Virus record (IMG/VR): IMGVR_UViG_3300023181_000025
Coordinates: 1-64,000 of that record
Length of the DNA stretch: 64,000 nucleotides
Reading direction: 5' to 3' (one strand)
Made by a program: the position numbers and the translations under genes. The stretch's first letter is position 1. The number at the start of each line of letters is the position of its first letter. The notes beneath the pieces were generated by a model, which was not told the origin of the DNA, ran no database searches, and saw nothing but the letters and a program-made list of their open reading frames with translations. Of the stretch, positions 4,900 to 55,865 are shown piece after piece.

Positions 4900-4928
4900 T
4901 TAATAATACATTTTCCCGGTTTTGTCAA
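4900..4928 (-). promoter_or_regulatory. sigma70-type promoter of the GT25-pyruvyltransferase gene
   Basis: TTGACA-N17-TATTAA, ATG 9 nt downstream. Confidence 0.55.
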
Positions 4929-11543: not shown

Positions 11544-11552
11544 TTGTAAAAT

Positions 11553-37455: not shown

Positions 37456-39966
37456 ATGGCTGTTAAAAATATAAATGAAATTTCGATTACTGGGTTTTCC
37501 CATTTAATTCTTTATGCGTTTTCTTATCAGCCGGGGTTCGCAGATTCATACGGAACCGTGGAGGCTCAATTTATCTCTGAAAACGGTGTTTTTCCTTCAG
37601 TAAATGTAATGGATCATAGTTATTTTCCTATATATTTTAAAAATGATGCGGGAACACAACAGCTCTTGGGAAATTTTACTGTAATTACTTCTACGGAATC
37701 TGCTGATGGAAAACTTAAAACATTGTCTGTGAAATTTGCGGATAGATCTGTTGAATTAGATAGATACATTGTTGCTCTACGGGGAGAGACGGGTTATGAT
37801 TCATTAGAATATAACTCATTGTCGGCAAAAGAAAAGACACGGATTATAGGCGCAATTTCTCCCGGAGGAAGGGTTTTATGGGTTGGAGAAAGCGACGAAA
37901 ACTGTAAAGAAGAAATCTCCGGTGGAGATGGAACGGATTTATGTGATCCATGTCCAGAGAAATTAACTCATGCCATGTATAGGCAACTTGATTGCGAGCA
38001 ATATTATCTTAACAATAGAAGAATATACAAATACAATTCTACTGATTTAGCTACAGCGGCGGCGGCAACTGGATTAGCGTTTGTTGGCTTTCCTTCTTCT
38101 GGTTTATATAAATTTCAATATTCAGGAACACTTAGACAAGTATTAAATAATATATGCTCTGAATTAGGCTATAGTTTTTGCTATAATCCTTCTACTAACC
38201 AGCTAAATTTTTTAAGAACTAGTGCGGGTATTTCTATAAATATAAAAAATCTTGAAAGCCCTGAAAATAAATGTAAAATACTTTCAAAACAAGTAACTAA
38301 ATCTCGTGAATCCTCAAAAAGCGTTTGGGGGGTTGCTGGTTTCAGTAGAGATTCGGAGGAAAAGAGATATACCTGTGGTCTTAATACGTGCCGCAAAATT
38401 CAATTAATGCCATTTACTCTGACGGATATCCTACCCAATGCTGCGCATTTTTCGGGCTCTGCAAATGGATTTTCACGATTGGAATTTTACTCTATGCTCA
38501 ATCATAGACTGGGAAAAGGTATTAGAGATCTAATGGTTTGGGCACAAGAGTATCAAATAAGGACTGATGTTACGACAGAAGCAAAAATTGGACAAAAATT
38601 AAACTACTTAAATGGTATGACCATTAAAAAGGTTTTTAGCGTCAATTCCGCAGATGAGCAAAGTAAATATGTTTATAGGTTAATGCTAAGGATTTTATCT
38701 GCTAAGGATTTTGATGCAATGAGAAATATTTCCGCCACCAAAAAATCATTTTTCTTTGTGGCGGAAACTAATGAAAAATATGAAGAAAAGATTAATAACT
38801 TAGAAACCTCTATAGCTGGAAATTTTCTTGGGCAATATTGGATAAGAAGGTTTAAGGAGCATTGGAATAGTCTTAGTTATCAAACAGTTTCCCCCGATGG
38901 TTCTATAAACTATTATGACTTTAAAGCGCCAATTAATCTACCATTTTCTGATATAGTTTTTGAAGCTTATGAGACATTAAACGGAAGCCCATTACTTGAC
39001 TTAGCCTCGGGATCAACTCCCGATGGATTAGAGGCCAAGGATACATTTTTTCTTATGAGTAGGCCCGCTGCCGCATGGCCAGTTAATTATAGCGATGCAT
39101 TATTAGGCCAAATTGAGTCACAAGTTTCAAAATATCTATTCAAAGAGATTTCTGTTCCAAGCGGAATAAGCAACTATATTAAAGACATCGTGCCTACTTA
39201 TGATCCGACTACACATAAATTATTTATTGTGGAGTCTCCGCTTGAAGATGTTACTGTATCTTTAGCTATTGGAAACTCTGATCATCCGGGCGAAGAGGAA
39301 AATCTGAATTTACCTACAGTTGTTTGTAATAAACGAACATCTTACGGTTTAAGAAGCTCAAATACGAAAAGATTTTCAGTTACATTGGGCTCCGTAAGTT
39401 TTGAAATATATTTACCTGCTCAATCAAGTGTTGATGGCAACAAATCAGGATATAATGCAATTTTAGAAAAAACTGGAGAGGACGGAACCTATGTTATTCC
39501 AAAAATAGAGGCTTTTGCTTCTTCTCCGGTTCCTACATATTCTTCCCCAAGTTTAACGGGAGAACTTAATCTATACAATGCAACAGAAAATGATTTAAGC
39601 TTATTGTCCGTTGAATCAGGAATAGGCTATTGTGACATGGACCCCGGAAAAATACAAAACTTACTTAATCCCTTGAGGTCTTTAAACACATATACTATTG
39701 GACAAACTGAAGAGAGGCAATACACAATTGAAGGTTTCCCAAAAGATTTTTACTACCCTATTGACGGGCTTAAGTCTATAAATGTAAGCTTGGGGTCTGA
39801 AGGACTTAAGACAACTTTATCTTTTAGCAATTCTTTTCCATTTAAACTCACCTCTGAACAATATATAAAAACTCTGAACAATTTGAGACTTAGAAATCTT
39901 GAAAAAACTCCTTCCGGCTCCTATAACCACGTTATCTCTACTGATTTACCTGAGGTTGACTATTAA
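37456..39966 (+). CDS. Baseplate hub/tail-tip protein
   Basis: YSGTLRQVLNNICSELGYSF and GLKTTLSFS patterns typical of hub-like proteins; synteny. Confidence 0.55.
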   Translation: MAVKNINEISITGFSHLILYAFSYQPGFADSYGTVEAQFISENGVFPSVNVMDHSYFPIYFKNDAGTQQLLGNFTVITSTESADGKLKTLSVKFADRSVELDRYIVALRGETGYDSLEYNSLSAKEKTRIIGAISPGGRVLWVGESDENCKEEISGGDGTDLCDPCPEKLTHAMYRQLDCEQYYLNNRRIYKYNSTDLATAAAATGLAFVGFPSSGLYKFQYSGTLRQVLNNICSELGYSFCYNPSTNQLNFLRTSAGISINIKNLESPENKCKILSKQVTKSRESSKSVWGVAGFSRDSEEKRYTCGLNTCRKIQLMPFTLTDILPNAAHFSGSANGFSRLEFYSMLNHRLGKGIRDLMVWAQEYQIRTDVTTEAKIGQKLNYLNGMTIKKVFSVNSADEQSKYVYRLMLRILSAKDFDAMRNISATKKSFFFVAETNEKYEEKINNLETSIAGNFLGQYWIRRFKEHWNSLSYQTVSPDGSINYYDFKAPINLPFSDIVFEAYETLNGSPLLDLASGSTPDGLEAKDTFFLMSRPAAAWPVNYSDALLGQIESQVSKYLFKEISVPSGISNYIKDIVPTYDPTTHKLFIVESPLEDVTVSLAIGNSDHPGEEENLNLPTVVCNKRTSYGLRSSNTKRFSVTLGSVSFEIYLPAQSSVDGNKSGYNAILEKTGEDGTYVIPKIEAFASSPVPTYSSPSLTGELNLYNATENDLSLLSVESGIGYCDMDPGKIQNLLNPLRSLNTYTIGQTEERQYTIEGFPKDFYYPIDGLKSINVSLGSEGLKTTLSFSNSFPFKLTSEQYIKTLNNLRLRNLEKTPSGSYNHVISTDLPEVDY

Positions 39967-40586
39967 TGAAAACGTATTTAAGAAATTTTTACCCACAAGA
40001 TTCTTCTCTTATCGCGGAAATGAATTATATTGACTTGGGATCAAAGTTTTCGAATTTTGGGCTAATTGGAGAAGAGTATAGCATTATATTTAATTTAGTA
40101 AATAGGAATCTTTTTTTTGAAAATAGTTTTATAGGGTCTTTGGGAAATAGTAATTCAGTGCATTTAAAGGTATTATGTGAAAATTCTGTTATATACATAC
40201 TATTGAATGAAATTCCAGTTAAAAATATTAATAAGAAATTTAAATTTTACAAAGTTTTTTGTGAATCGGAAGATAATTTTAATTTCATAGAAAATATTAA
40301 AGGTATTATACCTAAAATTGAATTAAATTTTTCGGAATGGAAAAAAGATGGCAGTGGAGAGATAAGTATAAATATAGATTTGGAGCATGATCTTGAAATA
40401 TATAATCTTGGTTCGGATTCACTCTATGCAAATATATTAAACTATCCTAGAACAGTATCAAAAAAAAATCCAGGAAAAATAATAATAAATTACGAAGGTA
40501 AAAGAAAATTTTGCTCTGAAGAAACTATAGTTTTCTATACTTCTGCTGGAATCTATAAAACAAACTTAAAGATAGACTATAAATAA
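39966..40586 (+). CDS. Hypothetical AT-rich protein
   Basis: ORF abutting both neighbours. Confidence 0.55.
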   Translation: MKTYLRNFYPQDSSLIAEMNYIDLGSKFSNFGLIGEEYSIIFNLVNRNLFFENSFIGSLGNSNSVHLKVLCENSVIYILLNEIPVKNINKKFKFYKVFCESEDNFNFIENIKGIIPKIELNFSEWKKDGSGEISINIDLEHDLEIYNLGSDSLYANILNYPRTVSKKNPGKIIINYEGKRKFCSEETIVFYTSAGIYKTNLKIDYK

Positions 40587-42176
40587 ATGAGTTTAAAGAA
40601 TAGTGCATCCTTTTCTTCTAATAGGCAGTCTCTTCAGTCCGATTCTTCTTTCGGCCCTTTTGAAGTAATCGACATGGGTGGGGGAAAAGTTGGAGTTAAT
40701 CAAGGCGTTATAATAAATAAAAGTGGGACTTTTTATATTGACTCTGATGACTTTTTAAGTCCAGCGAAACCGCAAAATTTATTGAGCGGTCCTGTTGTAG
40801 GGGCACAATTGCTAACCGTTCAAAATAACGGATTTGTTTGCATATTAATTTCGCCTAAAGCAACAGAAGACCCGGCCAAGCATGAGTATGAGGCCAGACT
40901 TGTTTATAGGTCTCCTGCCGATTTGCAAGGGGAATCCGGGCAAGTAATAAAATTGGCTAAAATCAGATCAATAGATTCTAGTTCTCCTGGGCAGGCTATA
41001 GATGTTGAAAATCTTTATGTTGGAAATATAATTATAAACGAGGGATCTTATCATGCATATCAAGTCATAGTTGATTCTGGAGTTCAGAAAGTTTATGTTG
41101 CAAATGGAAGCGTGGCAGCAACGATGCTTTGTGGTGATGAGGTGGTTACCGAGCCAATGATACCATACATTGGGGATGGCGGAGAAACAGAAAGTGGCGG
41201 ATTTATGGGATCTTGGGGTTTTGGAGGTTTCGATACCTCTTCTTCTTATGGAGTTTATGTTAAATTCGACTTTAGGGGTGCGGTGGTAGAAATTGTAGAA
41301 AACGACGAGGAATTAGAGCTTAAAGACTGTGAACGGGCATTTCAAGTTGCTAGGTTTAAATTGAAGAACGCAAGCTCTGGAGGAGGTTTGGTTGCGGATT
41401 ACATCACACAATATTGGCATAGTGATGTTTACTCTATGTTTGAAAAGTTTAATGAAAGTGAGGGCGGATGTTGTAATTCGAATGATGACTCTGGGGGTTC
41501 AGACGACGGCTCAGATGATTCAAGTGGTGGTGGCGATGGAAGCTCTGGCGATTCAGATGGCGATTCGGGTGATTCAGAAGGTTCTGAGGGTTCAGAAGGT
41601 GATAGTTCAGATGACGATTCGGATGATGATTCTTCGAGAGAATGTGATGATTTACTTGTGATGTCAAATTTAAGAGTTGTTGATGAAAATTATTATGGAT
41701 TTGGATGGAGTGGAAAATGTTTTGATGATCCTAGTGCCTCAAGTGCTCAGGGATCTATTGAAGTTGTTGTTGATTATGCTCCACTATGCACAAATTGTGC
41801 CAAGCATACTTATGTAGAAATTACGTGTAGTGGATTAGGAACTAAAAGACAAGTTGTCCCAATTGGTTCTTTTGGCGGAGTTCCGGGAGGAATGACTCCG
41901 GGAGGGTTTATAAAAGTAAAATTTGATTTCAGCTTAATTTTTCCTTGCACTGATTATGTTATAAGAGCTGTATTTTACCTCGTAAATGGGCCAAACTTAG
42001 ATACTCAGTTCCCATGCGAGGCAGAAAGCCCTGATCCCGATGATTTTGTTTATGAGAGTCTTATGAAAACAATATCTTGGAAATCAAGGGGTTATTGTGG
42101 AGATGGGATTGATTGCGAGAGTGGAGTTGATTCTTTAGTTTCCGATGAAGACGAAGAAGATCTTCCGTGGGCTTAA
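40587..42176 (+). CDS. Tail-associated protein with Ser/Asp/Gly low-complexity linker and Cys-rich C-terminal domain
   Basis: Last gene of the tail block; 53-aa S/D/G/E tract. Confidence 0.55.
   Translation: MSLKNSASFSSNRQSLQSDSSFGPFEVIDMGGGKVGVNQGVIINKSGTFYIDSDDFLSPAKPQNLLSGPVVGAQLLTVQNNGFVCILISPKATEDPAKHEYEARLVYRSPADLQGESGQVIKLAKIRSIDSSSPGQAIDVENLYVGNIIINEGSYHAYQVIVDSGVQKVYVANGSVAATMLCGDEVVTEPMIPYIGDGGETESGGFMGSWGFGGFDTSSSYGVYVKFDFRGAVVEIVENDEELELKDCERAFQVARFKLKNASSGGGLVADYITQYWHSDVYSMFEKFNESEGGCCNSNDDSGGSDDGSDDSSGGGDGSSGDSDGDSGDSEGSEGSEGDSSDDDSDDDSSRECDDLLVMSNLRVVDENYYGFGWSGKCFDDPSASSAQGSIEVVVDYAPLCTNCAKHTYVEITCSGLGTKRQVVPIGSFGGVPGGMTPGGFIKVKFDFSLIFPCTDYVIRAVFYLVNGPNLDTQFPCEAESPDPDDFVYESLMKTISWKSRGYCGDGIDCESGVDSLVSDEDEEDLPWA
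41478..41636 (+). repeat. Low-complexity Ser/Asp/Gly coding tract
   Basis: SNDDSGGSDDGSDDSSGGGDGSSGDSDGDSGDSEGSEGSEGDSSDDDSDDDSS (18 Ser in 53 aa). Confidence 0.9.
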
Positions 42177-42184
42177 TAATTAAA

Positions 42185-42214
42185 CTTGACAAATTGTCAA
42201 GAATAATATAATAT
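42185..42214 (+). promoter_or_regulatory. sigma70-type near-leaderless promoter whose -35 lies in a perfect palindrome
   Basis: CTTGACAA-A-TTGTCAAG; TTGACA-N17-TAATAT; ATG 7 nt downstream. Confidence 0.7.
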
Positions 42215-42221
42215 ATTTATT

Positions 42222-43985
42222 ATGATATTTGATGAGTATTTTGATAGAGTCGTTATATTAAGTCTTAATAACGAAGAAGGAAAGAAACGTTCCGAAAGAG
42301 CTATTAGAGAGTTAAAAGATAAAAATTTAAGCCAGAATGCTATAGTTTACCGTGCGGTAGACGGTAGAATATGCCGCCCACCTGATTGGTGGCCTGCCGG
42401 TCAAGGAGCTTGGGGGTGTCTCCAAAGCCATAACAGAATGGTTCAGGATGCTCTTCAAGATCAATGTAAATCTATTCTTATAATTGAGGATGACGCTATA
42501 TGGCAATCGAATGCTTATGATTTAGCAAAACAAGTTCTAGAAGAATTGCCAGATGATTGGGGTCAACTTTATTTAGGTGGGCAGCATCGGGGAGCTTTTG
42601 GTCCAACTAAAATACCCGGAAAAGATTCTATTGTAGTCGCAAATAGTATTCATAGAACTCATTGCTATGCACTAAACGCAAAAATTATGAGAAAATTCCT
42701 TAAACATATAATGGATTTCCCTGAGTATTCGAGAGCATTTAAGGAAAGCGACCAAAGAAGACATATCGACCATCAATTAGAGGAGGCGCACAGAAATAAA
42801 CTATGGAAAACTTATGCCTCTTCATGGTGGCTTGCAGGTCAAGGAGAAAATAAGAGTCATATAAATCTTAAAGAAAATACTGATAAATGGTGGCATTTTG
42901 TATGGGAGGATAACCACAGGGGAATTCCAATAATTATTATGGATCGCACCCCGACTAACCATGAGTTAAAATATTTACATTTTGGATATAATTTAACAGA
43001 AGAAGATCAAACTATAGATATCGGTGTAAGCGGCGCGAAGGACGCCAAGGCTTTAAACAGAGCTATTGAGTTTATTGCTATAGAGGGGTATAAGTTACAA
43101 AGGTTTCCTTGTGTTAATGTAAATGATAATAAGGACAAAATTGGTTGGATAAATGGTTTTTGGAAAGCCGGGGTTATAAATCTATCTTCCGGTCCAGACT
43201 TGGAAAAAATGTCAGATTTTGTAAATTCGAAAATAATTAACCATTACTGGATTAACCCACCTAAGGTTTTATCTGATGTTTTCTACTTGGATGAAAGTGA
43301 GTTTGAAATAATACCCAACAAAACGATCCACCAAATTTCATTAGATAGCAATCATTATAGAGACGATCTTAAATTTTGTTCTGAATCCGTAAAAACATGT
43401 TTTTTTCAGAATCCTTATAAACTATGGCAAGAGCGCGATATTCTTCATGGACTTGTGGGGAAATCTATTGCTCCAGAAGTAATTATAAATAAAGACAATT
43501 ATTATAGTCCCGAAGTTAGATCGGCTTTTATAAAATTAGAAATACTAAGACAGTTTGGGGGGTTGGTGTTAGATTTGGATATAGCCATATATAAGCCTGA
43601 GATTTCTCAGATTTTTAATGGGGATAAATTTATCTATTCTGATAGCGATATAGGAAAATGCTCTAATTCAATTATGTATGCTAGAAAAAATAATTTATTA
43701 GTGGAACTGTATTTAAGGAGAATGAGTGTTCAATTGCTGGATAACGGGGATGTTGATCCTATTAAATCTATGAGAGAATCTTTAGACTTTTATGTAAATA
43801 AGTGGAATGTTGAATCCACTTTAGAAATTTCTGGACAGTTGGTTGGCAATATATACAAAAACGGAAATGTTGTATTTTTACCTCATCAATCCTTTTTTCC
43901 TTATCAAAGAAAAACAGATTCAATGGAGACGTTTAAATTAGAAAATTACACTAAGGCATTTGCTGCCAAACATTGGAGAATATAA
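42222..43985 (+). CDS. Two-domain glycosyltransferase (GT25-like plus GT32/DXD-like)
   Basis: FDRVVILSL...RAVDG...GAWGCLQSH...ILIIEDDA...LYLGG...THCYA; C-terminal IPNKTIHQI...EILRQFGGLVLDLD. Confidence 0.8.
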   Translation: MIFDEYFDRVVILSLNNEEGKKRSERAIRELKDKNLSQNAIVYRAVDGRICRPPDWWPAGQGAWGCLQSHNRMVQDALQDQCKSILIIEDDAIWQSNAYDLAKQVLEELPDDWGQLYLGGQHRGAFGPTKIPGKDSIVVANSIHRTHCYALNAKIMRKFLKHIMDFPEYSRAFKESDQRRHIDHQLEEAHRNKLWKTYASSWWLAGQGENKSHINLKENTDKWWHFVWEDNHRGIPIIIMDRTPTNHELKYLHFGYNLTEEDQTIDIGVSGAKDAKALNRAIEFIAIEGYKLQRFPCVNVNDNKDKIGWINGFWKAGVINLSSGPDLEKMSDFVNSKIINHYWINPPKVLSDVFYLDESEFEIIPNKTIHQISLDSNHYRDDLKFCSESVKTCFFQNPYKLWQERDILHGLVGKSIAPEVIINKDNYYSPEVRSAFIKLEILRQFGGLVLDLDIAIYKPEISQIFNGDKFIYSDSDIGKCSNSIMYARKNNLLVELYLRRMSVQLLDNGDVDPIKSMRESLDFYVNKWNVESTLEISGQLVGNIYKNGNVVFLPHQSFFPYQRKTDSMETFKLENYTKAFAAKHWRI

Positions 43986-43986
43986 T

Positions 43987-44622
43987 ATGATACCAATAGA
44001 CTCCATACAAGTTATTAGTTTGCCAGAAAGGCATGATAGAAGAGAGATTCTTATTCCACTAATTAAACGAGCCATTAAATTAGGAATTTTTCCTGATATT
44101 GAGATAGAAATTATTAATAGGTTCCCTGTTGATGTTACAATGGTTCCTTCTTGGTGGAAGGATACTGAGGGGTATTATAGGTCTACACGAGAGCATATAG
44201 AAATATTACAAAATCTTTATCAACGAAAATCGAGTTTGGCTATGATTTTTGAAGATGACGCTTTGATACATGAAAATTTCTATTCCGGTGTAGAAGAATT
44301 TTATCAAGATATAAATAATTTGCGTCCCGATTGGGCTGCTTTATTTTTAGGGGGAAGAGACGAGAAAATGAAAGGAAGATTTCCAATTAATGCAATATCG
44401 TCCTTAAATAGAGGTTGTCTTGGAAGTCATGCTTATATTGTAAATCCTTACGGAATAAGAACTCTCCATGACAAGGCTTCAAAATGCGAAGAAATTATTG
44501 ATTGGTCTTATATGCGTTTAATGGGATCTATGTCCTGTTTTTATTCTCCGAGAAATTACATGGTAGGAACCCAAGCAGGGTGGTCAGATAATATGAAAAA
44601 ATACGTTCAAGAAGAAAATTAA
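43987..44622 (+). CDS. GT25-like glycosyltransferase
   Basis: VISLPERHDRR, MIFEDDA, LFLGG, GSHAYIV; probable start ATG 43987. Confidence 0.8.
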   Translation: MIPIDSIQVISLPERHDRREILIPLIKRAIKLGIFPDIEIEIINRFPVDVTMVPSWWKDTEGYYRSTREHIEILQNLYQRKSSLAMIFEDDALIHENFYSGVEEFYQDINNLRPDWAALFLGGRDEKMKGRFPINAISSLNRGCLGSHAYIVNPYGIRTLHDKASKCEEIIDWSYMRLMGSMSCFYSPRNYMVGTQAGWSDNMKKYVQEEN

Positions 44623-44624
44623 AA

Positions 44625-45830
44625 ATGAGTGAAATCAATAGATTTTATGAAATTTATAAAAATAAAATTAACCAAAACGAGTCTTCAACTGCTCTAATAA
44701 ACTTTCTTGATGAAAATTTATCATATAAATGTAAAACCGTATTAGATTTAGGTTGTGGGAATTTAGAATGGATTTCCAAGTGTGAGAGCATTAAAAACGC
44801 AAATTTATATTACTTGGGTGTAGATATAATTCCCGAACTAATAAAATATAACGAAGCTTTATATCCTTGGTTTAATGGTGTATGTGAAGATTTAGAGAGT
44901 TTTATTAAATGGCCAAAAGCGGATATAGTTATATTAAGAGATGTTTTAAAATATCATTGTAATAATACCGCTCGCGATATTATAATGTATTCCCTTTATA
45001 ATAAATGGGAATATTTAATTATATCAACCACTAAAAATGATATATCTAATTTTAAAAGAAAAAAAATAAGGGGCGGGAACTCTGAAGAATTTAATATTTT
45101 AGAGAGTTTTAAGTTTTTTGAATTTCCTATAATGAGAATAGAAAGAAAAAATTGTATGGATCTGGTTATAGCAAGGGGTGAAGGGCATTTTGATTATATT
45201 GAAATTGGGATATCTCACTTTGATACCATTCTACATAAGTCAATAAGGAATCATAAATCCCATAACCCTCCTTGGAAAGGAATTAGTATGGATGGTGTTT
45301 CATTCTTTTTGGATAAACTTCCCACTCAACAGGAAAACATTAAAGTTTTAGGTTGTATGGGATTACAAGAAGGATGTGGGGAGATATATTATATAGACCC
45401 TGACCAATATAAGCCGAAAAGAATTCCGGTTTATTTAAGTGGTTACTCTAAACTTAATTCTCTACATGAAGTTTGTGTTGATAATTTAAATTCCCTATCA
45501 ATCTCCCCTGAAGAAGTTGTCTTAAAACAGGAGACCCCTATAATTTCTGCGGAATATTTAATAAAAAAATATAGCATCAAAACAATTGGTTATTTGAAGC
45601 TACAAACCAATGATAATGATTTAGAAATTTTATCTTATTTTATTGAGTGCTTCAAAGATAATTATGATTTACTTCCGGGAAAAATATCTCTCAGAATGCC
45701 AAGAAAAGACAGGTATAAACAAAGCTTATTTATACAAGTCATGAATTTTTTTAAGCTGAAGGGGTATATAATAGACGAGGCAAATAATTTAGATATTATA
45801 TTCACAAGGTATATTTCATATATACCCTGA
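44625..45830 (+). CDS. Class I SAM-dependent methyltransferase fused to an FkbM-like domain
   Basis: VLDLGCG, YLGVDI, RDVLKYH; second half DYIEIG...GISMD...IGYLKLQT (degenerate FkbM-like). Confidence 0.65.
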   Translation: MSEINRFYEIYKNKINQNESSTALINFLDENLSYKCKTVLDLGCGNLEWISKCESIKNANLYYLGVDIIPELIKYNEALYPWFNGVCEDLESFIKWPKADIVILRDVLKYHCNNTARDIIMYSLYNKWEYLIISTTKNDISNFKRKKIRGGNSEEFNILESFKFFEFPIMRIERKNCMDLVIARGEGHFDYIEIGISHFDTILHKSIRNHKSHNPPWKGISMDGVSFFLDKLPTQQENIKVLGCMGLQEGCGEIYYIDPDQYKPKRIPVYLSGYSKLNSLHEVCVDNLNSLSISPEEVVLKQETPIISAEYLIKKYSIKTIGYLKLQTNDNDLEILSYFIECFKDNYDLLPGKISLRMPRKDRYKQSLFIQVMNFFKLKGYIIDEANNLDIIFTRYISYIP

Positions 45831-46562
45831 GAACCTGTCTTTTTCAGATACATAGTCTGAAAGAATTAAATTGACTGGAGTTCCTAGTGCTATGCTTGGA
45901 AGATATACATGGAGTCTCGAAGTGTTTACTTGTGAAGCCTGAGATATAAAATTTACTCTTTTTAAAGCTAAATCTATTCTTTCTTGGAAACCTTTTCCTT
46001 TTAGGTTATTATCAATTTGCTGAATTGAACTTGAATATGTTTTATAATTTAAAAGATTATCTATATCGTAAGAGCCTTCTCTTTGTCCTGTATATTTTGG
46101 GAATGTCAAAGATATGCAGCCTCCGAATTCCGCATCGACTCCGCATTTCCTTAAAAAATCTCTGGTAGCTATATCCCGGCACATCGCGGGAAAACCTTGT
46201 TGCTTTACCATAGATTTGAACCACTCTCTTTTAGCATAGGCATTTTTTTGCCTAATGTCTCGGCAGTGATAACTTGCTATAATAACGTCTGTTTTACATG
46301 GCAGAACGTCTCTTCCTATCCATCCACACAAGAGAACAAGAGAATCTTTCGGCCAAGTAGAAAATTCGTCCCTTGAGACAAAATTATTGACGCCAAAAAA
46401 ACTTGAAGCAGCTAGTGATTGAATATCATCCCCTAAATTATTAGAACCTAATGCAATTGGAATATGGGTGACTTGATTTAAAAAAGATTCCCGCAACCAA
46501 GATAAATTCATTGGTTGCGGGAAAGTATTTTCGTTTATATCGTTTTGAAGGATCTTAATCAT
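45816..46562 (-). CDS. Polysaccharide pyruvyltransferase-family protein
   Basis: NLGDDIQS, CRD..T, TSRLHVYLP...LGTPV. Confidence 0.8.
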   Translation of the reverse strand: MIKILQNDINENTFPQPMNLSWLRESFLNQVTHIPIALGSNNLGDDIQSLAASSFFGVNNFVSRDEFSTWPKDSLVLLCGWIGRDVLPCKTDVIIASYHCRDIRQKNAYAKREWFKSMVKQQGFPAMCRDIATRDFLRKCGVDAEFGGCISLTFPKYTGQREGSYDIDNLLNYKTYSSSIQQIDNNLKGKGFQERIDLALKRVNFISQASQVNTSRLHVYLPSIALGTPVNLILSDYVSEKDRFSGYI

Positions 46563-47269
46563 TCAAATTCTTCTTTATCCGCCGCTTCGATGATGGAAAT
46601 TCTGTCTTCCTGATATTGGAAACTATGGCGGGGACCATCATAGTAAGCAAGGGGGCTTTTTAGAGAGAACTTCTGGTTCTCTATATCGAACTCTAACTCT
46701 ATAATTTCACAGTTTTTAGGGTTTCTTATAAGCTCAAACTCTTCAACAGATAAGTTCAAAAGGCTCATTAAGTGAACCCTTATGAACATACCATGACTTA
46801 CAATCCCTATATTTGGAGGGCAATCCTTTTCGTTAAGTCGATTTATTAATTCTGTTAAATTAAATAACTCCGCTCTTTCATAAACATCTGCGCAACTTTC
46901 GCCTCCCGGAAACCTATAATGGAAAACTCCCCATTTAAGCCGTTCCCTTTCGAGATCCATATTGGAGTGTGTCCCTACACTGTTAGTCCACTCTTGTTCC
47001 CTAATTAAAGGGGTTTCTTTTTTTCGTATTACTTTATTTTTTAAAGTTTTCGAAATATTGAAAAAGGTCTGTCTTGTCCTGTGGTGCGTAGAAACGAAAA
47101 AATCAAATTCGCCATCAATTTTAGATAAGATTTTTCCCGCTTTTTGAGCTTGTTCTGTTCCCCTTTTGGTAAGTTTTATGGCATAGTCAGGTGTATCGCT
47201 ATAAATATTATGATTAATATTTCCTTCGCTTTCTGCATGTCTCACCAAAAGTATTCTTTTATTCTTCAT
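46559..47269 (-). CDS. Histidine phosphatase (phosphoglycerate mutase superfamily)
   Basis: LLVRHAESEGN, IREQEW, FPGGES, IVSHG; probable start ATG 47269. Confidence 0.9.
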   Translation of the reverse strand: MKNKRILLVRHAESEGNINHNIYSDTPDYAIKLTKRGTEQAQKAGKILSKIDGEFDFFVSTHHRTRQTFFNISKTLKNKVIRKKETPLIREQEWTNSVGTHSNMDLERERLKWGVFHYRFPGGESCADVYERAELFNLTELINRLNEKDCPPNIGIVSHGMFIRVHLMSLLNLSVEEFELIRNPKNCEIIELEFDIENQKFSLKSPLAYYDGPRHSFQYQEDRISIIEAADKEEFE

Positions 47270-47270
47270 A

Positions 47271-47933
47271 TTAATGGTGGTCATAGATTTTAACTGGCTT
47301 GCTTTTCATAATTTTGTCAATTTCATCAAGCCAGAAAAAACTTCTACTCGTATGCTTAATTGCGTTTTCAACCCCACAATCCAACATTTTCCCAAAGTCC
47401 TTTTCTTCTGGGTTTAGTTGAGGGCAATTTGAGTGGCTATGCCCAAAGAGGGCCGGTAACTCGTATTTCATTTTATCCCAAATAAGTGGCGCAAAATGCG
47501 AGCAAAAATATGTCCTTTTATTGGCGACCATGAAAAACTGATCCCCTAAAATATATTTACCCTCTTCAATTTCAATTGGGAAAATGTCTTGTCTGACTCC
47601 CAGAACGTTTTGCGGGTTTTGAAACTTGACTGCTTCATCATACATTTGTTTAATACCTGATGGATGATTTCCAAAAAGAAACAATGTTCTACATGGTATT
47701 TCTCGAACTAGATTCGCTACATCTGTATTGTCGGCATTGAGAGCAAAATCCCCTAAAGAAATTAAAATGTCATCTGGCTTTAGTAGCTTCCAGTCTTCGC
47801 GAATCTTAGATAGATTTTCTTCTCTATTTTTAAAACCTCTTGGGCAATAAAGAAATTCTTTGTTGTGGTAAGCATGTTGATCCGATTGGACCGCTATACG
47901 GCCAAATTTTAAATTGTCTAGATTGATCTTCAT
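47271..47933 (-). CDS. Calcineurin-like metallophosphoesterase
   Basis: SDQH, LGD, GNH, SH, GHSH. Confidence 0.85.
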   Translation of the reverse strand: MKINLDNLKFGRIAVQSDQHAYHNKEFLYCPRGFKNREENLSKIREDWKLLKPDDILISLGDFALNADNTDVANLVREIPCRTLFLFGNHPSGIKQMYDEAVKFQNPQNVLGVRQDIFPIEIEEGKYILGDQFFMVANKRTYFCSHFAPLIWDKMKYELPALFGHSHSNCPQLNPEEKDFGKMLDCGVENAIKHTSRSFFWLDEIDKIMKSKPVKIYDHH

Positions 47934-49235: not shown

Positions 49236-50282
49236 TTATTTTTTAATGTAATATAGAAAAACTTCAGCCTCTTCCAGAAAATCTTTATCTTCCGCTCCGG
49301 CTAAAATGTTGTTTCCTCGTGGGTCGCTAGATTTTATGTTATTCTTTAAGTGGAATAAACTATTAAACGTTCCATTTTTAGAAACTATTTTTCTTTTTGA
49401 TTCTATGTAAGTATCATGCCTTAAACCAAGTAATTTGTCAACATTATTTTTCCCCCAATTTTCGCTTACTTGAATTGGTTTAAAATCAAAGAATTGGAAT
49501 TTTAGCTCTTCTACATTTTGGTCATCGTAACATACCAATATATAAGGGATTCCTAATTTTTCTATCTCTCTCACTGACTCAGGCTCTATTCCCTTACCTA
49601 GAAATATGTCTATCCTTTCGCAGCCTTTTAGAAATGGCAAAATGGACGTAGGGATTTTACTTGATATACTTATAATGGGTTTGGTCCCTGCACTTACCGC
49701 ATCCATAGCAAATTTCCAATTTTTAAATAAGTCACATCTAATCCCAATTGGGGATTTAGGCAACCGGCTAATTGTATGGAAATTAAAATCTGGAATTATT
49801 TCTATAACCTCTACCCCAAAATCTGGCCCGACTAAAACAGTTTCGATATTAACATTTATATCAATTTTACATTTATCAAAAATGTATTGGGCTACGACTT
49901 CAGGGTTTTCATCATTTATCTTTAAATGGTTTAGGTTTTTTGACAATTCTAGTATCCACTCATTATCAGAAATTAAACATATCGCATTTTTCGCAAGATA
50001 TGCGTAGTGTCTTATATTTTTTGTATTAACTGGAAATGAACCATTCAAAGGGTTTCCACCATTAAGGTTAATATTGCATATGTAAATATCTTTTTGGGCA
50101 AGAATTGGTGCCGTTATGTCAATAACTTGTTTCCAATATGGAAACCCTCCGTCATTTGAGACTATTATGTATTTTTCAAACGGGAGAGGAAAATAATTAT
50201 AATTTATTTTTTCTACCTCTTCTTGTGGGTTTCCATACAAAGAAAATTTAATATTTTCTATTTCAGTTATTGATCTCATCAA
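49236..50282 (-). CDS. Hypothetical protein with degenerate GT9-like (GT-B) N-terminal half
   Basis: PYWKQVI...NIRHYAYLAKNAICLISDN resembles the GT9 C-terminal Rossmann domain. Confidence 0.4.
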   Translation of the reverse strand: MMRSITEIENIKFSLYGNPQEEVEKINYNYFPLPFEKYIIVSNDGGFPYWKQVIDITAPILAQKDIYICNINLNGGNPLNGSFPVNTKNIRHYAYLAKNAICLISDNEWILELSKNLNHLKINDENPEVVAQYIFDKCKIDINVNIETVLVGPDFGVEVIEIIPDFNFHTISRLPKSPIGIRCDLFKNWKFAMDAVSAGTKPIISISSKIPTSILPFLKGCERIDIFLGKGIEPESVREIEKLGIPYILVCYDDQNVEELKFQFFDFKPIQVSENWGKNNVDKLLGLRHDTYIESKRKIVSKNGTFNSLFHLKNNIKSSDPRGNNILAGAEDKDFLEEAEVFLYYIKK

Positions 50283-52131
50283 ATATTTTGTTGTTTTTAA
50301 AGATTACCTTTTTAAACCTAAATTCCTCATTTTTATTTTTTACTTCAGAAAGCCAAATGGGGTCTATTGATTTACTTGATTTCGGAATAATTTTATAACT
50401 ACCGCACTCTAAATAAATTTGTTCATCTACTTCATCCGCTACAATATAAACTTTTTCATTTTCGCAAAGGTCTTTTACAAATTTAAGACAGGCTAGTCGT
50501 TGCTCAATTTTTGGAGGGGATATAAAAGCTACAAATCCTTTATCCGTATCGTTTTCGAAATAGGTGGTGATTTCTGTTTTTTTTCTATTCGTGTTATTTT
50601 TTCGGGCGAATTCAGTAGTTGTTTTATAAACATTCTCTTTTGTATCACCGAATTCTATTTTTTTAAGAAGTTTTTTAATAACTTGACTATCTTTTGTCTC
50701 GTCTTGATTCAGAACACCTTTTATTAGGTCTATACACCAGTCCGTAGTATCTTCTATATCTTGGAATGGGTAGCTTGGATTAAATTCAAATCTATTAATT
50801 GAATAATTATTATCCGGTTCTGGACAACTATCTATCCAATCTTCAATTAATCCGCAAATGCGCTTTACATTAAATCGTTCACTTGCCCAAGATGAACCAT
50901 CCTTTGATCTAGAGTCTATATTATTTGATTCACAGAAGTTTTTAATTAGCTCGGCAATATGATTTGGTGAGGGTTGGGCTTTTTTGAATTGACTTTGGCA
51001 CTCCCTGTATTCTGTATGGGTTATTGTATCAACAAATGGTTGTTCGCAGAACTCTTCTCCACAGGAATAATTAACGGTGGCTACTGGCGTTCCTGCCATT
51101 AGGCTTTCTACGATTGGCATTTCTAGGCCGCCTGATGTTACCGGATGAACATAGTAATCAATAACATTGTAGATTTCGTTCATTTGGGGGTCCGAAACGC
51201 CCTTGTAGCTCTTTACAGTATATTGGGATTTTTCGCTGCCGCAATGTTGACAGTTTTCTTTATCTGTAATAAACGGTTTTAATGAATAGCCTCCACAATT
51301 ATTACATACATAAGTGGCTAGAACATCTTCGTTGTTTATATTATATTCTTCCAGAAATGAGGGGATATCCCACTTGCCTTCTTCGACCCAATTAGTGTGA
51401 AGCAAGAGTTTTGCTTTAATATTTGGATTTGAGTTTTTAAAAATTGAAAAGGCCTCAATTAGTGTTCCTACTAATTTACGAAGCTGATTTCTAAAAACAA
51501 AACCTACAATAACAGTGTTTGAGTCAAGATTATTTTTTTTCTTAATTGCTAATTTATCCAGCGGTTTAAAATTTTCTGTATCAATTGCTCCCGGAATTGT
51601 TTTGACATGAGTGTGACCGAGTCTCTTAAATTCATTTTCCGCGAATTTACTCCAAACCCATAAATTTTTAATTTTGTGGGCGTTTTCTCTGGCCTCTTTA
51701 TATAAAGGTAAAGAGTCTGCGGTAGCCCATATAGCACAATTGACTTTGTTCCACCAAGGCTTGTCGGTATATCCATCAAATGCCCAGAAATCATTGACAC
51801 CGATATAAATATCTGGCCGTTCTTTTTCTATTATATCGTCTATATAAAGTCCACCGTATTTACTTATACTATTTAAATACTCAGATTCTTCAAGGGCATT
51901 TTTTGCCCCTCGTTCTTCCGGCATGGCCCCATAGGCCCGCCACGGAACCGCTGAAAGCCTTTTATCTTTATAGGTGAATGGGGCGCAAGCAAATTCAATT
52001 ATCTCATATTTCCCCGTAGCATATAAATACGACAAAACAGCTTTGGCGTTTTTACCAAAGCCGGATGGAGTTTTACAAAAATCACTAGCCCAAAGAATTT
52101 TTTTCTTTTTGCTGTTACTTGTTTCCATCAT
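50263..52131 (-). CDS. GT4-family (GT-B) glycosyltransferase with Zn-ribbon insert
   Basis: SGFG, RPDI, RNQLRK, MNEIYN..D, GGLEMPIVESLMAGTPV; CNNC...CQHC insert. Confidence 0.85.
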   Translation of the reverse strand: MMETSNSKKKKILWASDFCKTPSGFGKNAKAVLSYLYATGKYEIIEFACAPFTYKDKRLSAVPWRAYGAMPEERGAKNALEESEYLNSISKYGGLYIDDIIEKERPDIYIGVNDFWAFDGYTDKPWWNKVNCAIWATADSLPLYKEARENAHKIKNLWVWSKFAENEFKRLGHTHVKTIPGAIDTENFKPLDKLAIKKKNNLDSNTVIVGFVFRNQLRKLVGTLIEAFSIFKNSNPNIKAKLLLHTNWVEEGKWDIPSFLEEYNINNEDVLATYVCNNCGGYSLKPFITDKENCQHCGSEKSQYTVKSYKGVSDPQMNEIYNVIDYYVHPVTSGGLEMPIVESLMAGTPVATVNYSCGEEFCEQPFVDTITHTEYRECQSQFKKAQPSPNHIAELIKNFCESNNIDSRSKDGSSWASERFNVKRICGLIEDWIDSCPEPDNNYSINRFEFNPSYPFQDIEDTTDWCIDLIKGVLNQDETKDSQVIKKLLKKIEFGDTKENVYKTTTEFARKNNTNRKKTEITTYFENDTDKGFVAFISPPKIEQRLACLKFVKDLCENEKVYIVADEVDEQIYLECGSYKIIPKSSKSIDPIWLSEVKNKNEEFRFKKVIFKNNKIFDEINN

Positions 52132-52690: not shown

Positions 52691-55273
52691 TTATTCTTTT
52701 ATTCCTTTTAAATCAGCTAAGGAAATGCAAATTTTGTAATTCTGAATTTTCATACTATTCACCCAAGTGATATCCCCGTTTGCACTACCTACAATAAATA
52801 AAACATCTCCCTCTTTTGGGTCTAAATGACCATCTTGAGCATAATTTTCATATTTATCGCCAAGCATCATGGCATCAAAAGAGCCAGTTTCATCAAATAA
52901 ATTCATTTTAATATATTTATTTCCGGCCTTGGATGTCCCCTTTTTAACCTCTCCAACCTGATACACGCCTTCAACTTTCCATCCCGGTTCGAAACTTTTT
53001 ACTTCTAGCGCATTTTTAAGGGTAGATTTTGAACCAATGAAAACTTTTTTAAGTGTTGTCGTGAAGCTATATCCCAATAGGGTTTTTTCGTAATACCAGC
53101 TTGCAAATAATGGATGCTTGATGTTTTGATGATAAATTTCCTTATATTTGACTGAGCCTTTGCGAATTGTTTCCAATCTAGTTTTACCGGCGACTCTTTT
53201 GCCGGTAGAGTCAACCCAAGAGTCTATGTTCTTTACCATCATAAGAAGATCGAAATCATAGGATTGGCCATTTTCCAAGCAAAAAGCTTGCTCTTTTGGC
53301 TTAAGAAGGTTCCAAATCTGACCTTCAAAGACCGTTCTTTCTCTATTTGGGGAAACAGAGTTCAACATGCCAGCTTGAATAAGCGCACAAACGACCCCTA
53401 TATTCAGTTTACTCTGTTTTGCCGCATTAAATACTTCAAATTTATTAGTTTTATTTATTGAAAGGAAATTAGTTAGCGACTCTAAGGATTTTTGGCTCAC
53501 CCCTTTAATACTACTAAAACCATAACGAATATCTGAACCCTCTAGCGAGAAATCTGGTTTGCTTTTTATTAAGTCGGGGGGCAATAGCTTAATTCCAAAG
53601 AAATTAAGTTCTTGTTGAATAAGGCTGATATGGTCTTGCGTGTCAGACTTATTTTGCGCCATTCTTAAGCATTCACAATAAAATACTTGAGGATATTTAT
53701 ACTTATAATATAAAGTTAGGGCCGATAGATAACTATATGCGGCGCTGTGAGATTTATTGAACGAATAGTTGGCGGATTCTTCAAGAAGGTTCCAATAAAA
53801 ATCTGCAATTTCTGTCGGAAGGCTTTTGGATTTTTGGGCTTCGTAAATCCTCTCTTTCCACTTTGCTACTTCTTCTGCCTTTTTTTTACCAATCGCACGC
53901 CTCAGACCTTCAGAGTCCTCAAGACTAAAGCCAAAGACCTTGTGGCCTATGCTGAGGGCTTGTTCTTGATAGATGGGGATATTATGGGTTGGCGCAAGAA
54001 TTTCTTGCATTTCTTTTGTCCCCCAATATTCTTTATATTCATTCTTTACATAGTCTCCTACATAGGCCATTGCACCCGGACGAGCAAGGGCAATAACGTC
54101 ACTTAGTTCGCTCCAATTTTTTGGCTTTACCTCTTGAAATACTCTATAGTTTGCGCTTGCTCCAATTTGGAATAGTCCATACGGCAAGTCACCAGTTTGA
54201 GAGACTTGATAGATCCAAGGATCATCAGGGCTAAAATGTTTTATATCAAATTTTACTCTTTCGTCGTCTAGTGATTTTTCATCAATGACTTTTAGTGATT
54301 TTTCGATTCTGTCAATAAGAGTTACACCATGTAGCCCAAGCAAATCTAATTTAATAGATTCTTGTTGGGCATAGTTCATATCAAATGAGCTAATTACCTC
54401 ACCTTCGCCGTCAAGTTCGCAAGGAAGAAAGTCGTCTAATGGATCATAGCTAACCAAAAAAGCTGAAGCATGAGAACCCTTTTGCCTCATTAATCCTTCA
54501 ACTTTTGAAGCAATCCTAACAACTTCAGAATGTTCCTTGGCAAACGCTGCAAAATCTTCGCTTTCTTCTTGAGATTTTTTTAAAGATAATGGTTGACCGA
54601 ACTTTGTAGGAATGCTTCTTGTCCCTTGCATAAGGGTCTCTTCTGGTAAATTTGCTACAATTTTTCCACAATCTTTTAAAGCTATTCTGGACGCCAATGT
54701 AGAAATTGTCGGCAGCTTACAGAATTTTCCCCTATATTTATTTTTTAGGTGTTCAATTACTTCAAATCTTCTGTCAGTGCATATATCAAGGTCCACATCC
54801 GGGGCAAGATTTCCGTCCAAGTAAACAACGCCATCAACTGTTTTTGATTTAGCTCTTGCCCTTGAAATGAAACGCTCAAAAATTAGACTGTTTTCTACTG
54901 GGTCGATCCCAGTTACCCCAATCAAATACATAACTAGACTGCCCGCCGCCGATCCTCTTCCGGCCCCAGTAGGGATATCCTTTTCGTGACAAAAATTAAT
55001 AACATCCCAAATTAGGAGGAAATAATCTGTGAATTTAAGCTCATCAATTACCTCTAGTTCTTGCTTTGCGCGATTTACGTAATCGACATTATTTCTTACG
55101 CCCCTTTCCTTCATTCCTTTTACACAGAGTGCTTTCAGGAACTGAATATTAGAAACTTCCGGGGAAATGTTATTATCCCGGTAGTAATGTTCATCAATTT
55201 TAATTTCTGGCAGTCTAACGCCATGAATTTTAATCTCCAAATCGGAGAACTTATTTAGAAAGGACTGTTCCAT
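52691..55273 (-). CDS. dnaE: DNA polymerase III alpha, catalytic part (no PHP domain)
   Basis: DYFL, GAGRGSAAGSLV, FERF, PDVDLD, KLDLLGL, YQEQ, YSFNKSH, C-terminal OB fold. Confidence 0.95.
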   Translation of the reverse strand: MEQSFLNKFSDLEIKIHGVRLPEIKIDEHYYRDNNISPEVSNIQFLKALCVKGMKERGVRNNVDYVNRAKQELEVIDELKFTDYFLLIWDVINFCHEKDIPTGAGRGSAAGSLVMYLIGVTGIDPVENSLIFERFISRARAKSKTVDGVVYLDGNLAPDVDLDICTDRRFEVIEHLKNKYRGKFCKLPTISTLASRIALKDCGKIVANLPEETLMQGTRSIPTKFGQPLSLKKSQEESEDFAAFAKEHSEVVRIASKVEGLMRQKGSHASAFLVSYDPLDDFLPCELDGEGEVISSFDMNYAQQESIKLDLLGLHGVTLIDRIEKSLKVIDEKSLDDERVKFDIKHFSPDDPWIYQVSQTGDLPYGLFQIGASANYRVFQEVKPKNWSELSDVIALARPGAMAYVGDYVKNEYKEYWGTKEMQEILAPTHNIPIYQEQALSIGHKVFGFSLEDSEGLRRAIGKKKAEEVAKWKERIYEAQKSKSLPTEIADFYWNLLEESANYSFNKSHSAAYSYLSALTLYYKYKYPQVFYCECLRMAQNKSDTQDHISLIQQELNFFGIKLLPPDLIKSKPDFSLEGSDIRYGFSSIKGVSQKSLESLTNFLSINKTNKFEVFNAAKQSKLNIGVVCALIQAGMLNSVSPNRERTVFEGQIWNLLKPKEQAFCLENGQSYDFDLLMMVKNIDSWVDSTGKRVAGKTRLETIRKGSVKYKEIYHQNIKHPLFASWYYEKTLLGYSFTTTLKKVFIGSKSTLKNALEVKSFEPGWKVEGVYQVGEVKKGTSKAGNKYIKMNLFDETGSFDAMMLGDKYENYAQDGHLDPKEGDVLFIVGSANGDITWVNSMKIQNYKICISLADLKGIKE

Positions 55274-55865
55274 AGGCTAAGTGTTTAAATACGTCTGCGT
55301 TAATTGTAACATCATAAAGAGCGTCATGCAACTTCTTTTCGTCAACTGGGATATTGAAGCTTTTCGCCACGTCAATTAATTTTCCCTTAAAGGCCTTGTC
55401 ATACCTACCAAGCATTTTATACATGAATGAAAGACGCTCTCGCTCATCGGCGGGTAATTGAACCTCAAAGAATCTTCCTCTCGCCATACAAAGCGTATCA
55501 ATACACCTATAGATAAAATCTCGAAAATCTAACTTGCGGCCAACATAATTATACAGATTCATAAGGATATAAATGTCATACCCCAATATATTGTGACCAA
55601 CAAGTAAATCATCAGTTTCAATAAAATCTTTTTGGATGATATCTACTACATGATCGGCTGGAAGTTTTTTCTTATTATAAATCTCCCAAGAGAATCCAGT
55701 AACCTTGGCTGCGTCTGGGTTTACCTTTAGATTGTGAATATCTATATAAAGATTTTGTCTATCTACAATTTTATTGTTTTTAAGTTTTACATAGGCTAGT
55801 TGCCATGGTCGAGTTAGACTTAAGTTAAGGGATTCCGTTTCCATGTCCCAGATAGTTGCGTTCAT
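55251..55865 (-). CDS. DEDDh 3'-5' exonuclease (DnaQ-like)
   Basis: WDMETE, VGHNILGYD, IDTL, LHDALYDV. Confidence 0.9.
   Translation of the reverse strand: MNATIWDMETESLNLSLTRPWQLAYVKLKNNKIVDRQNLYIDIHNLKVNPDAAKVTGFSWEIYNKKKLPADHVVDIIQKDFIETDDLLVGHNILGYDIYILMNLYNYVGRKLDFRDFIYRCIDTLCMARGRFFEVQLPADERERLSFMYKMLGRYDKAFKGKLIDVAKSFNIPVDEKKLHDALYDVTINADVFKHLAYGTVLSK

Follow-up and report, generated by a model that had tools for sequence, protein, structure and literature searches.

A serine-rich linker encoded ahead of GT25-like glycosyltransferases in a phage genome is a candidate O-glycosylation acceptor

Introduction

What is a long run of serine, aspartate and glycine doing in the last structural gene of a phage, immediately ahead of genes for glycosyltransferases (GTs)? 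This question is raised by the IMG/VR virus record IMGVR_UViG_3300023181_000025 (211,168 bp, rated complete by CheckV), whose first 64 kb (64,000 nucleotides, hereafter the window) we analyzed. The final + strand gene of its structural module encodes P0001, a protein with a 53-residue tract of Ser, Asp, Gly and Glu, and a sequence-only reading had proposed that this tract accepts O-linked glycans from the enzymes encoded next to it. Comparative associations and predicted folds lead us to consider it reasonably probable that the tract is an O-glycosylation acceptor of the adjacent GTs.

Long, acidic, Ser-rich and disordered stalks lie between the functional domain and the anchor of staphylococcal ClfA and SdrC/D/E. 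Ser residues of these Ser-Asp repeat (SDR) stalks are glycosylated by SdgA and SdgB, soluble cytoplasmic enzymes whose genes adjoin that of the substrate, and the glycan shields the stalk against proteolysis. Long Ser-dominated disordered spacers also separate the globular domains of carbohydrate-active enzymes secreted by marine Gammaproteobacteria; we know of no tie between these polyserine linkers and a dedicated neighboring GT. To our knowledge, direct evidence of glycosylated phage particles is confined to a few actinobacteriophages. The literature searched contained no account of phages that pair a Ser tract with GT25.

The tract and its carrier protein

The layout of P0001 is as follows.

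40587..42176 (+): P0001, 529 aa, final + strand gene of the structural module, after the tape measure gene (ORF, translation)
40644..41036 (+): N-terminal beta domain, aa ~20-150, confined to the lineage of the window phage (AlphaFold2)
41052..41468 (+): second beta domain, aa ~156-294, ending in a Q-x-W-x-S-D-[IV] motif and Cys-Cys (alignment; the second group of relatives described below matches aa ~155-350)
41478..41636 (+): S/D/G/E tract, aa 298-350, candidate O-glycosylation acceptor (translation, disorder in the model)
41646..42116 (+): Cys-rich C-terminal beta-sandwich, aa ~354-510, with a conserved Cys pattern (alignment, model)

Translation bore out the description of a Cys-flanked, 53-aa tract with 18 Ser. 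Residues 298-350 comprise 18 Ser, 18 Asp, 13 Gly, 3 Glu and 1 Asn (net charge -21); Cys295-Cys296 lie two residues ahead of the tract and Cys353 three residues past it. Given that these five residues (S/D/G/E/N) make up 39% of the rest of P0001, the chance of 53 of them in a row is ~3e-22. The dipeptides include 5 SD, 8 DS and 4 SG, the last in an acidic context. At the DNA level, no clean tandem repeat underlies the tract (TRF reported 2.2 copies of a 12-nt unit), and five different Ser codons are used. The tract is unique among the 404 ORFs of the 211-kb genome. The only other Ser-rich tract in the genome lies beyond the window, where a 209-aa ORF (G000:C1:106308-106937, +) has a Ser/Cys/His-rich C-terminal tract.

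An AlphaFold2 model of P0001, built with 24 relatives, has beta-rich domains at residues ~20-150, 156-280 and 355-510. The N-terminal domain is modeled with a pLDDT mostly of 87-96, with a few lower blocks, and the tract with a pLDDT <50. The tract is thereby predicted to be disordered between the second and third beta-rich domains. As the sequence-only reading had it, the tract separates a beta-rich N-terminal part from a Cys-rich C-terminal domain, with 9 of the 14 cysteines of P0001 at or beyond residue 353. No Pfam or PHROG family matched P0001, and Foldseek searches returned only generic Ig/FN3/CARDB-like sandwiches (E >0.001 against the PDB) and uncharacterized phage proteins. The name "last tail protein" therefore holds by position, as P0001 is the final + strand product after the tape measure, and finds no family or fold match to a tail part. 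This position, together with a conserved N-terminus and a variable C-terminus, is compatible with a tail fiber or receptor-binding protein, with generic fold matches only.

The adjacent enzymes

Downstream of P0001 lie the following genes and domains.

42222..43985 (+): two-domain GT, 587 aa, starting 45 bp past P0001 (PF01755, fold)
42222-42887 (+): GT25 domain, aa 1-222 of the 587-aa enzyme (Pfam, fold)
43314-43982 (+): GT-A domain with a DXD motif, aa 365-587 of the 587-aa enzyme, preceded by a linker domain (fold, motif)
43960..44622 (+): second, divergent GT25-like enzyme, 220 aa, overlapping the end of the 587-aa gene (PF01755)
44625..45830 (+): methyltransferase fusion, 401 aa, 2 bp after the 220-aa gene (Pfam/PHROG, comparison with locus L041)
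45816..46562 (-): polysaccharide pyruvyl-transferase-like protein, 248 aa, convergent with the GT operon (PF04230, 26.7 bits)
46559..47284 (-): histidine-phosphatase-superfamily protein, 241 aa, of uncertain module membership (PF00300, E 1e-26)

The next two genes are indeed GT25-like: the 587-aa and 220-aa proteins scored 34.3 and 27.9 bits against PF01755 (Glyco_transf_25, cut-off 24), and both scores were reproduced on the genome. The model of the 587-aa GT (pLDDT 89) contains two GT-A domains; no signal peptide or membrane segment was found in it. Its GT25 domain superposed on the catalytic domain of COLGALT1 (GLT25D1) with Z 21.1 and an rmsd of 2.3 Å over 195 aa, and further matches were mimivirus R655 (Z 17.4) and a bacterial GT25 beta-1,4-galactosyltransferase (Z 16.7). 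With COLGALT1 and R655, its best fold matches, the domain has the EDD motif and the GT25 Pfam family in common; E89-D90-D91 is invariant across 30 sequences. Sequence identity to COLGALT1 and R655 is 15-20%. COLGALT1 transfers sugar onto a protein side-chain hydroxyl (hydroxylysine of collagen, in triple-helix sequences). The second domain of COLGALT1 is a non-catalytic, N-terminal GT-like domain, whereas the window enzyme has a second GT-A domain with a DXD motif instead.

This second domain, whose D451-x-D453 motif is invariant in the GT alignment, matched effector GT-As that place sugars directly on protein side chains, namely TpeL (Z 15.9), YeGT (15.8), PaToxG (15.1), TcdA (15.0), SetA (14.0) and NleB/SseK (~12.4), as well as Och1 (14.3), a GT32 mannosyltransferase; TpeL and TcdA are of the GT44 type. 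These matches (Z 12-16) come with 8-15% identity. Pfam gave no match for aa 365-587 of the window protein; orthologues with 39-42% identity matched PF04488 (Gly_transf_sug; 29.7 bits, cut-off 23) and, weakly, TcdA_TcdB. In the models, the likeness of the C-terminal domain to protein-glycosylating GT-As is at the level of fold only. Unlike the effectors, the window enzyme lacks delivery, protease, receptor-binding and target-recognition parts, and is fused to a GT25 domain. A complex prediction of the 587-aa GT with P0001 residues 286-362 scored 0.03, which is evidence in neither direction.

The 401-aa fusion combines a class-I methyltransferase (aa ~19-158) with a Methyltransf_21-like domain (aa ~187-387). 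Its aa 35-158 and 187-387 correspond to two adjacent genes in L041 (9815-11031; 191 aa, and 214 aa with Methyltransf_21). An orthologue of the 220-aa GT25 (E 1e-44) occurs in L082, where a tract protein and a 617-aa GT are encoded upstream of it.

The 45-bp gap between P0001 and the first GT gene holds a perfect palindrome with a 7-bp stem (42185-42201), which overlaps a promoter-like match (TTGACA-17-TAATAT) and may be a regulatory site or a hairpin. A scan for promoters and terminators performed no better than on shuffled sequences and did not settle co-transcription.

Ser-rich tracts upstream of related glycosyltransferases

With the GT as the sole probe, we recovered 29 viral loci, mostly through matches to the GT25 domain alone, 27 of which could be scored. 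With strict thresholds, the ORF directly upstream of the GT encoded a Ser-rich tract in 17 of the 27, compared with 11 of 348 other genes there (Fisher p = 1.2e-15). Several further viral loci had a tract under slightly relaxed thresholds or one more gene upstream.

The ~60 tracts ranged from acidic S/D/G tracts through Ser/Gly repeats to pure poly-Ser of more than 100 residues. Ser accounted for 23-75% of residues (median 47.5%), Asp for 0-35% (median 4%), Glu for 0-17% (median 0.5%), Gly for 0-47% and Thr for 0-25%, and length varied from 0 to >100 aa among relatives. By composition, what the tracts conserve is Ser and not acidity: the Ser hydroxyl is the sole constant, and an acidic tract is typical of the sub-clade to which the window belongs.

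On a tree of GT25 domains, tract presence was clustered, with 5 changes compared with 9.8 in shuffles and none of 500 shuffles reaching so low a number. Tracts characterize two large clades and are mostly lacking in one other. On this sequence evidence, the association between tract and GT is old.

A fixed insertion junction

Searches with tblastn and megablast against 50,697 GenBank phage records gave no match. A related-locus search in viral contigs yielded zero confirmed loci, and a word search, swamped by the low-complexity tract, yielded one relative. Relatives were found by exhaustive phmmer, which returned 31 distant ones in two groups, sharing either aa 1-170 only or aa ~155-350 onward.

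The first group (P0003, P0004, P0006, P0007, P0010, P0018 and P0019; 27-41% identity) consists of positional orthologues from the same lineage, as shown by flanking genes that match at E 1e-200 to 1e-300. In the second group, ~20 members have a common layout: a beta domain ending in Q-x-W-x-S-D-I, a tract, a CCP or CxC motif, and a Cys-rich domain with conserved cysteines. The junction tract in these relatives is 30-70 aa long and Ser-rich with Asp, Glu or Gly, constant in position and variable in sequence. P0012, P0013, P0016 and P0020 carry a second tract and an additional domain, and are therefore beads-on-a-string proteins. In the tract-less orthologue P0004, W-R-S-D-I is joined directly to CCPD, so that an empty insertion site is visible. 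As aligned, the tract is a family trait inserted at one fixed junction. P0001 itself looks chimeric in these alignments, with a lineage-specific N-terminal domain, which we infer to anchor the protein to the particle, and a "domain B - tract - Cys domain" unit that is closest to proteins of other phages.

A cassette on unrelated phages

Four loci (L002, L003, L005 and L041) encode a relative of the tract protein, 374-390 aa long, and directly after it an orthologue of the two-domain GT of 598-612 aa, the genes overlapping or lying <=44 bp apart. The GT orthologues are 39-42% identical to the window enzyme over their full length, and the tract proteins only ~26%. One or more methyltransferases come next, those of L002, L003 and L005 being homologues of the 401-aa fusion, and a convergent pyruvyl-transferase-like gene is present in L002 (44% identity) and L003 (E 3e-76). 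Genes of the cassette often overlap or lie 16-45 bp apart; on the short contig L004, the GT starts immediately after the tract protein.

The head and tail genes of these four loci are unrelated to those of the window, and outside the cassette we detected nothing in common. In L002, whose terminase is lambda-type and whose coat is P22-type, the cassette is placed between head genes and a gene for a tail-sheath-like protein; L041 encodes a capsid-protease fusion of the HK97 type as well as an integrase. The window GT clusters with those of L002, L003, L005, L041 and L036 in the GT25 tree (98/89 support). By these comparisons, everything from domain B through the pyruvyl-transferase-like gene behaves as one inherited block, and the candidate acceptor domain and the enzymes as one mobile cassette.

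A ~232-310-aa protein precedes the tract protein in L002 (9327-10025), L003 (6297-7001), L005 (4924-5865) and L007 (4566-5333), with 24-37% identity. No counterpart was detectable in the window, where a 206-aa protein occupies that position.

Same-lineage comparison

The place of P0001 in its lineage is fixed by two upstream structural genes (37456..40586, +), whose products have 836 aa and 206 aa. The 836-aa protein has matches in L036, L037, L038 and L039 (E 1e-207 to 1e-303), and the 206-aa protein matches the N-terminus of the 519-528-aa neighbors of the 836-aa homologue in L036-L038. The positional orthologues compared here have in common the gene for the 836-aa protein on the upstream side and the replication genes on the other.

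Window: 53-aa tract; two GT25 genes, methyltransferases and a pyruvyl-transferase-like gene
L036: ~47-aa S/D/E/P tract; two GT25 genes, a methyltransferase, a UDP-galactopyranose mutase and an NDP-sugar epimerase
L037: 10-residue Ser patch, then a K-S-S-A-I-V motif as after long tracts elsewhere; one GT25 gene
L038: no tract in any frame; no GT25 in any frame
L039: no tract in any frame; no GT25 in any frame
L034: no tract; no GT (contig of ~3 kb only)
L035: no tract; no GT (contig of ~3 kb only)

With L037 counted as tract-positive, the association has p = 0.03; restricted to complete contexts (3 of 3 vs 0 of 2), p = 0.1, which is not significant alone. The expectation that homologues keep the tract only beside the GT genes holds for the long-tract relatives, which have GT25, and for L038 and L039, which have neither; it is strained by L037. 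The lineage pattern is small yet compatible with the acceptor hypothesis, and looks graded in these sequences.

Further glycan genes lie close to the tail module in two relatives of the window phage: L036 encodes a UDP-galactopyranose mutase together with an NDP-sugar epimerase/dehydratase (11140-13114), and L039 a sulfotransferase (1489-2283).

Bacterial loci and likely hosts

The GT25 clade is found in 71 bacterial genome loci (L042-L112), nearly all from Verrucomicrobiota or Planctomycetota, including Luteolibacter, Verrucomicrobium, Haloferula, Schlesneria and Pirellulaceae. Given this distribution, Verrucomicrobiota or Planctomycetota are probably the hosts of the window phage, although its GC content of 37% is low for both groups. 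A tract protein lies within two genes of the GT25 gene in 21 of 65 bacterial loci (16.5% expected; p = 0.0013), a weaker link than the viral one.

In the Luteolibacter locus L040 (9188-15646), a 2152-aa YD-repeat protein with S/G tracts of 157 and 54 residues adjoins a GT25 gene, with a Gly_transf_sug GT and a 912-aa methyltransferase nearby. Tract-bearing GT25 neighbors of 2000-2300 aa also occur in L049, L055, L067, L083 and L085, again in Verrucomicrobiota genomes; the YD/Rhs identity and the partner enzymes are taken from L040. That an unrelated YD-repeat carrier is found beside the same enzyme set suggests that the tract itself is what the enzymes recognize. These giant Ser/Gly-tract proteins are possibly glycosylated bacterial surface proteins or proteins of the polymorphic-toxin type.

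Discussion

How might the tract and the enzymes work together? In the proposed mechanism, a Ser-rich disordered linker would have been inserted at the conserved junction of a putative virion protein made of several beta-sandwiches. Late in infection, in the cytoplasm, the soluble GT25 domain, acting alone or together with the toxin/Och1-like GT-A domain, would place sugars from host UDP-sugars directly onto Ser hydroxyls of the tract. The glycan would next be lengthened by the 220-aa GT25 and decorated by both methyltransferase domains and by the pyruvyl-transferase-like protein. The outcome would be a stiff, protease-resistant, hydrophilic glycan brush that keeps the Cys-rich distal domain off the particle. 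The sequence-only reading had placed such a stalk at the tail tip; a glycosylated stalk is probable, and a location at the tip no more than possible. In the distant phage L002, the cassette lies between head genes and a tail-sheath-like gene. More tentatively, and with somewhat less confidence than we have in the tract as an acceptor, we propose a widespread, undescribed O-glycosylation system of Verrucomicrobiota/Planctomycetota phages and bacteria, in which the GT25 clade recognizes Ser-rich disordered linkers in any carrier and a mobile cassette provides mucin-like, glycan-coated fibers.

Several observations weigh against glycosylation of the tract, and some of them favor its strongest rival. 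In that rival, the tract is an unmodified, flexible, hydrophilic spacer, and the GTs act on the host envelope or lipopolysaccharide (LPS), for superinfection exclusion or receptor masking, on another virion protein, or on a free glycan; tract and GTs would be adjacent as accessory genes gather at the ends of structural modules. Disorder is predicted here as for any linker, and polyserine linkers are able to work unmodified. GT25 is annotated as an LPS-core family and classically comprises LPS-core builders. The gene content of the interval from the last tail gene to the replication module varies among relatives. No tract lies near the GT25 gene in eight to nine of the viral loci or in two thirds of the bacterial loci. 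L037 has a GT25 gene despite a mere 10-residue patch, and becomes a partial counter-example if scored as tract-negative. The sample behind the comparative tests is small and phylogenetically clustered, and the ~5 label changes on the GT tree mean that there are few independent events. Finally, ORFs in the fetched loci were simple greedy longest-ORF calls, poorest for high-GC bacterial loci.

An unmodified spacer nevertheless leaves unexplained the 20-fold enrichment of Ser tracts directly upstream of the GT, the co-transfer of tract and enzymes between phage backbones, including into a head/sheath position, and the Ser tracts of the unrelated bacterial YD-repeat protein. GTs without a signal peptide or membrane segment in the model, co-directional with late structural genes, also speak against it. 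On balance, we regard an unmodified spacer, adjacent to the GTs through the gathering of accessory genes, as unlikely, while taking it more seriously than any other alternative; the comparative tests favor an acceptor for the adjacent GTs.

A far less probable reading is that the acidic tract and its cysteines form a Ca2+- or metal-binding or electrostatic element that stabilizes the fiber or attracts it to a cationic surface. The net charge of -21 over 53 residues and the conserved Cys on both sides would suit such a role, but GT-adjacent tracts have low medians of Asp (4%) and Glu (0.5%), many are pure poly-Ser or Ser/Gly, and P0001 showed no EF-hand or other binding-motif periodicity in the tract and no Pfam match.

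Equally improbable is a slippage-prone spacer of variable length that tunes reach or host range, or a phospho-Ser tract served by the nearby histidine phosphatase: a tract length of 0 to >100 aa among relatives, and a His_Phos_1 gene 4.4 kb downstream with weak similarity to phosphoserine phosphatases, are set against tract DNA without a clean tandem repeat, length variation that fits glycosylation as well, no kinase found, and a phosphatase that is far below every curated NCBIfam cut-off and, though present in the window, is missing from the other cassettes. We treat metal binding and phosphorylation as minor rivals, since the tracts do not conserve acidity and only the window carries the histidine phosphatase.

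How does glycosylation of the tract by the adjacent GTs compare with known systems? The conceptually closest is virion glycosylation in mycobacteriophages, probably as an analogous and not a homologous system. In Che8-type phages (Freeman et al. 2023, as cited in PMC12619734 and PMC12801897), phage GTs, accompanied by methyltransferases, are reported to act in the cytoplasm on short flexible segments of structural proteins of the same phage. As described there, the acceptors are C-terminal tails of capsid or tail-tube subunits in actinobacteriophages, whereas here the candidate is a long internal Ser-rich linker of a fiber- or decoration-like protein. By the same description, the window enzymes also appear to differ, being a fusion of GT25 with a toxin/Och1-like GT-A, in phages whose hosts are probably Verrucomicrobiota or Planctomycetota.

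The likeness to staphylococcal SDR proteins and streptococcal serine-rich repeat adhesins (SRRP) is best read as an analogy and not as membership. "SDR-like", as the sequence-only reading put it, survives in this looser sense, with no homology behind it: SDR regions are strict SD repeats of hundreds of residues, while the window tract has 5 SD in 53 aa and no repeat unit, and SdgA/B are GT4 enzymes of GT-B fold, while the window enzymes are GT-A. We rejected membership of the SDR/Sdg system because both repeat type and GT fold differ; the only GT1/GT4-like gene is 8 kb from the tract gene and also occurs in tract-less relatives. This gene (50263-52131, 622 aa) lies in the replication module and is kept in all relatives.

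The suggestion that acidic Ser-Gly sites accept glycosaminoglycans here was dropped: despite four acidic SG dipeptides, no xylosyltransferase-like family was found among the neighboring genes. Tracts of the window type are tied to a GT25 clade, unlike the gammaproteobacterial polyserine linkers.

If the tract is indeed an acceptor, virion glycosylation would be common in uncultured environmental phages, through a different enzyme family, and a Ser-rich linker would be an acceptor signature readable from sequence, giving a simple rule to predict glycosylated phage proteins. Glyco-engineering would gain a compact cassette of acceptor and enzymes, and the ways in which phages of Verrucomicrobiota and Planctomycetota protect or tune their fibers would become easier to approach. 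A function would also be suggested for the many poly-Ser and Ser/Gly linkers in giant surface proteins of these bacteria.

Other features of the genome

The genome has a GC content of ~37%, a tRNA search found none, and an alternative genetic code was not needed for translation. The + strand structural module of the window contains an intein-bearing large terminase, a 1950-aa tape measure and six more large ORFs. No usable Pfam or PHROG family was found for the five tail genes upstream of P0001; a 623-aa protein among them had one weak PHROG match of unknown function. After the structural module comes a - strand replication module with DNA polymerase III alpha, a DnaB-like helicase and a PD-(D/E)XK nuclease.

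The large terminase (13560-16298, +, 912 aa) carries its intein at aa 217-459 (Pfam Intein_splicing, E 2e-11), which interrupts the terminase profile matches at aa 31-126 and 451-783. DNA polymerase III alpha is apparently split (52691-55273 and 55862-56596, both -), with a 244-aa PHP-domain gene upstream of the 860-aa core. Positions 1-2000 of the window have a GC content of 47%, compared with ~37% elsewhere, and include a DUF932 ORF (703-1686); the shift may reflect a foreign insertion or proximity to the genome end.

A second polysaccharide pyruvyl transferase (3517-4890, -, 457 aa; PF04230, E 1e-20) has a ~230-aa N-terminal extension. Directly upstream of it, an 845-aa protein (4925-7462, -) has weak phage tail-fiber repeats and no Ser tract. 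Together, the two are possibly a second pair of a fiber and a glycan enzyme.

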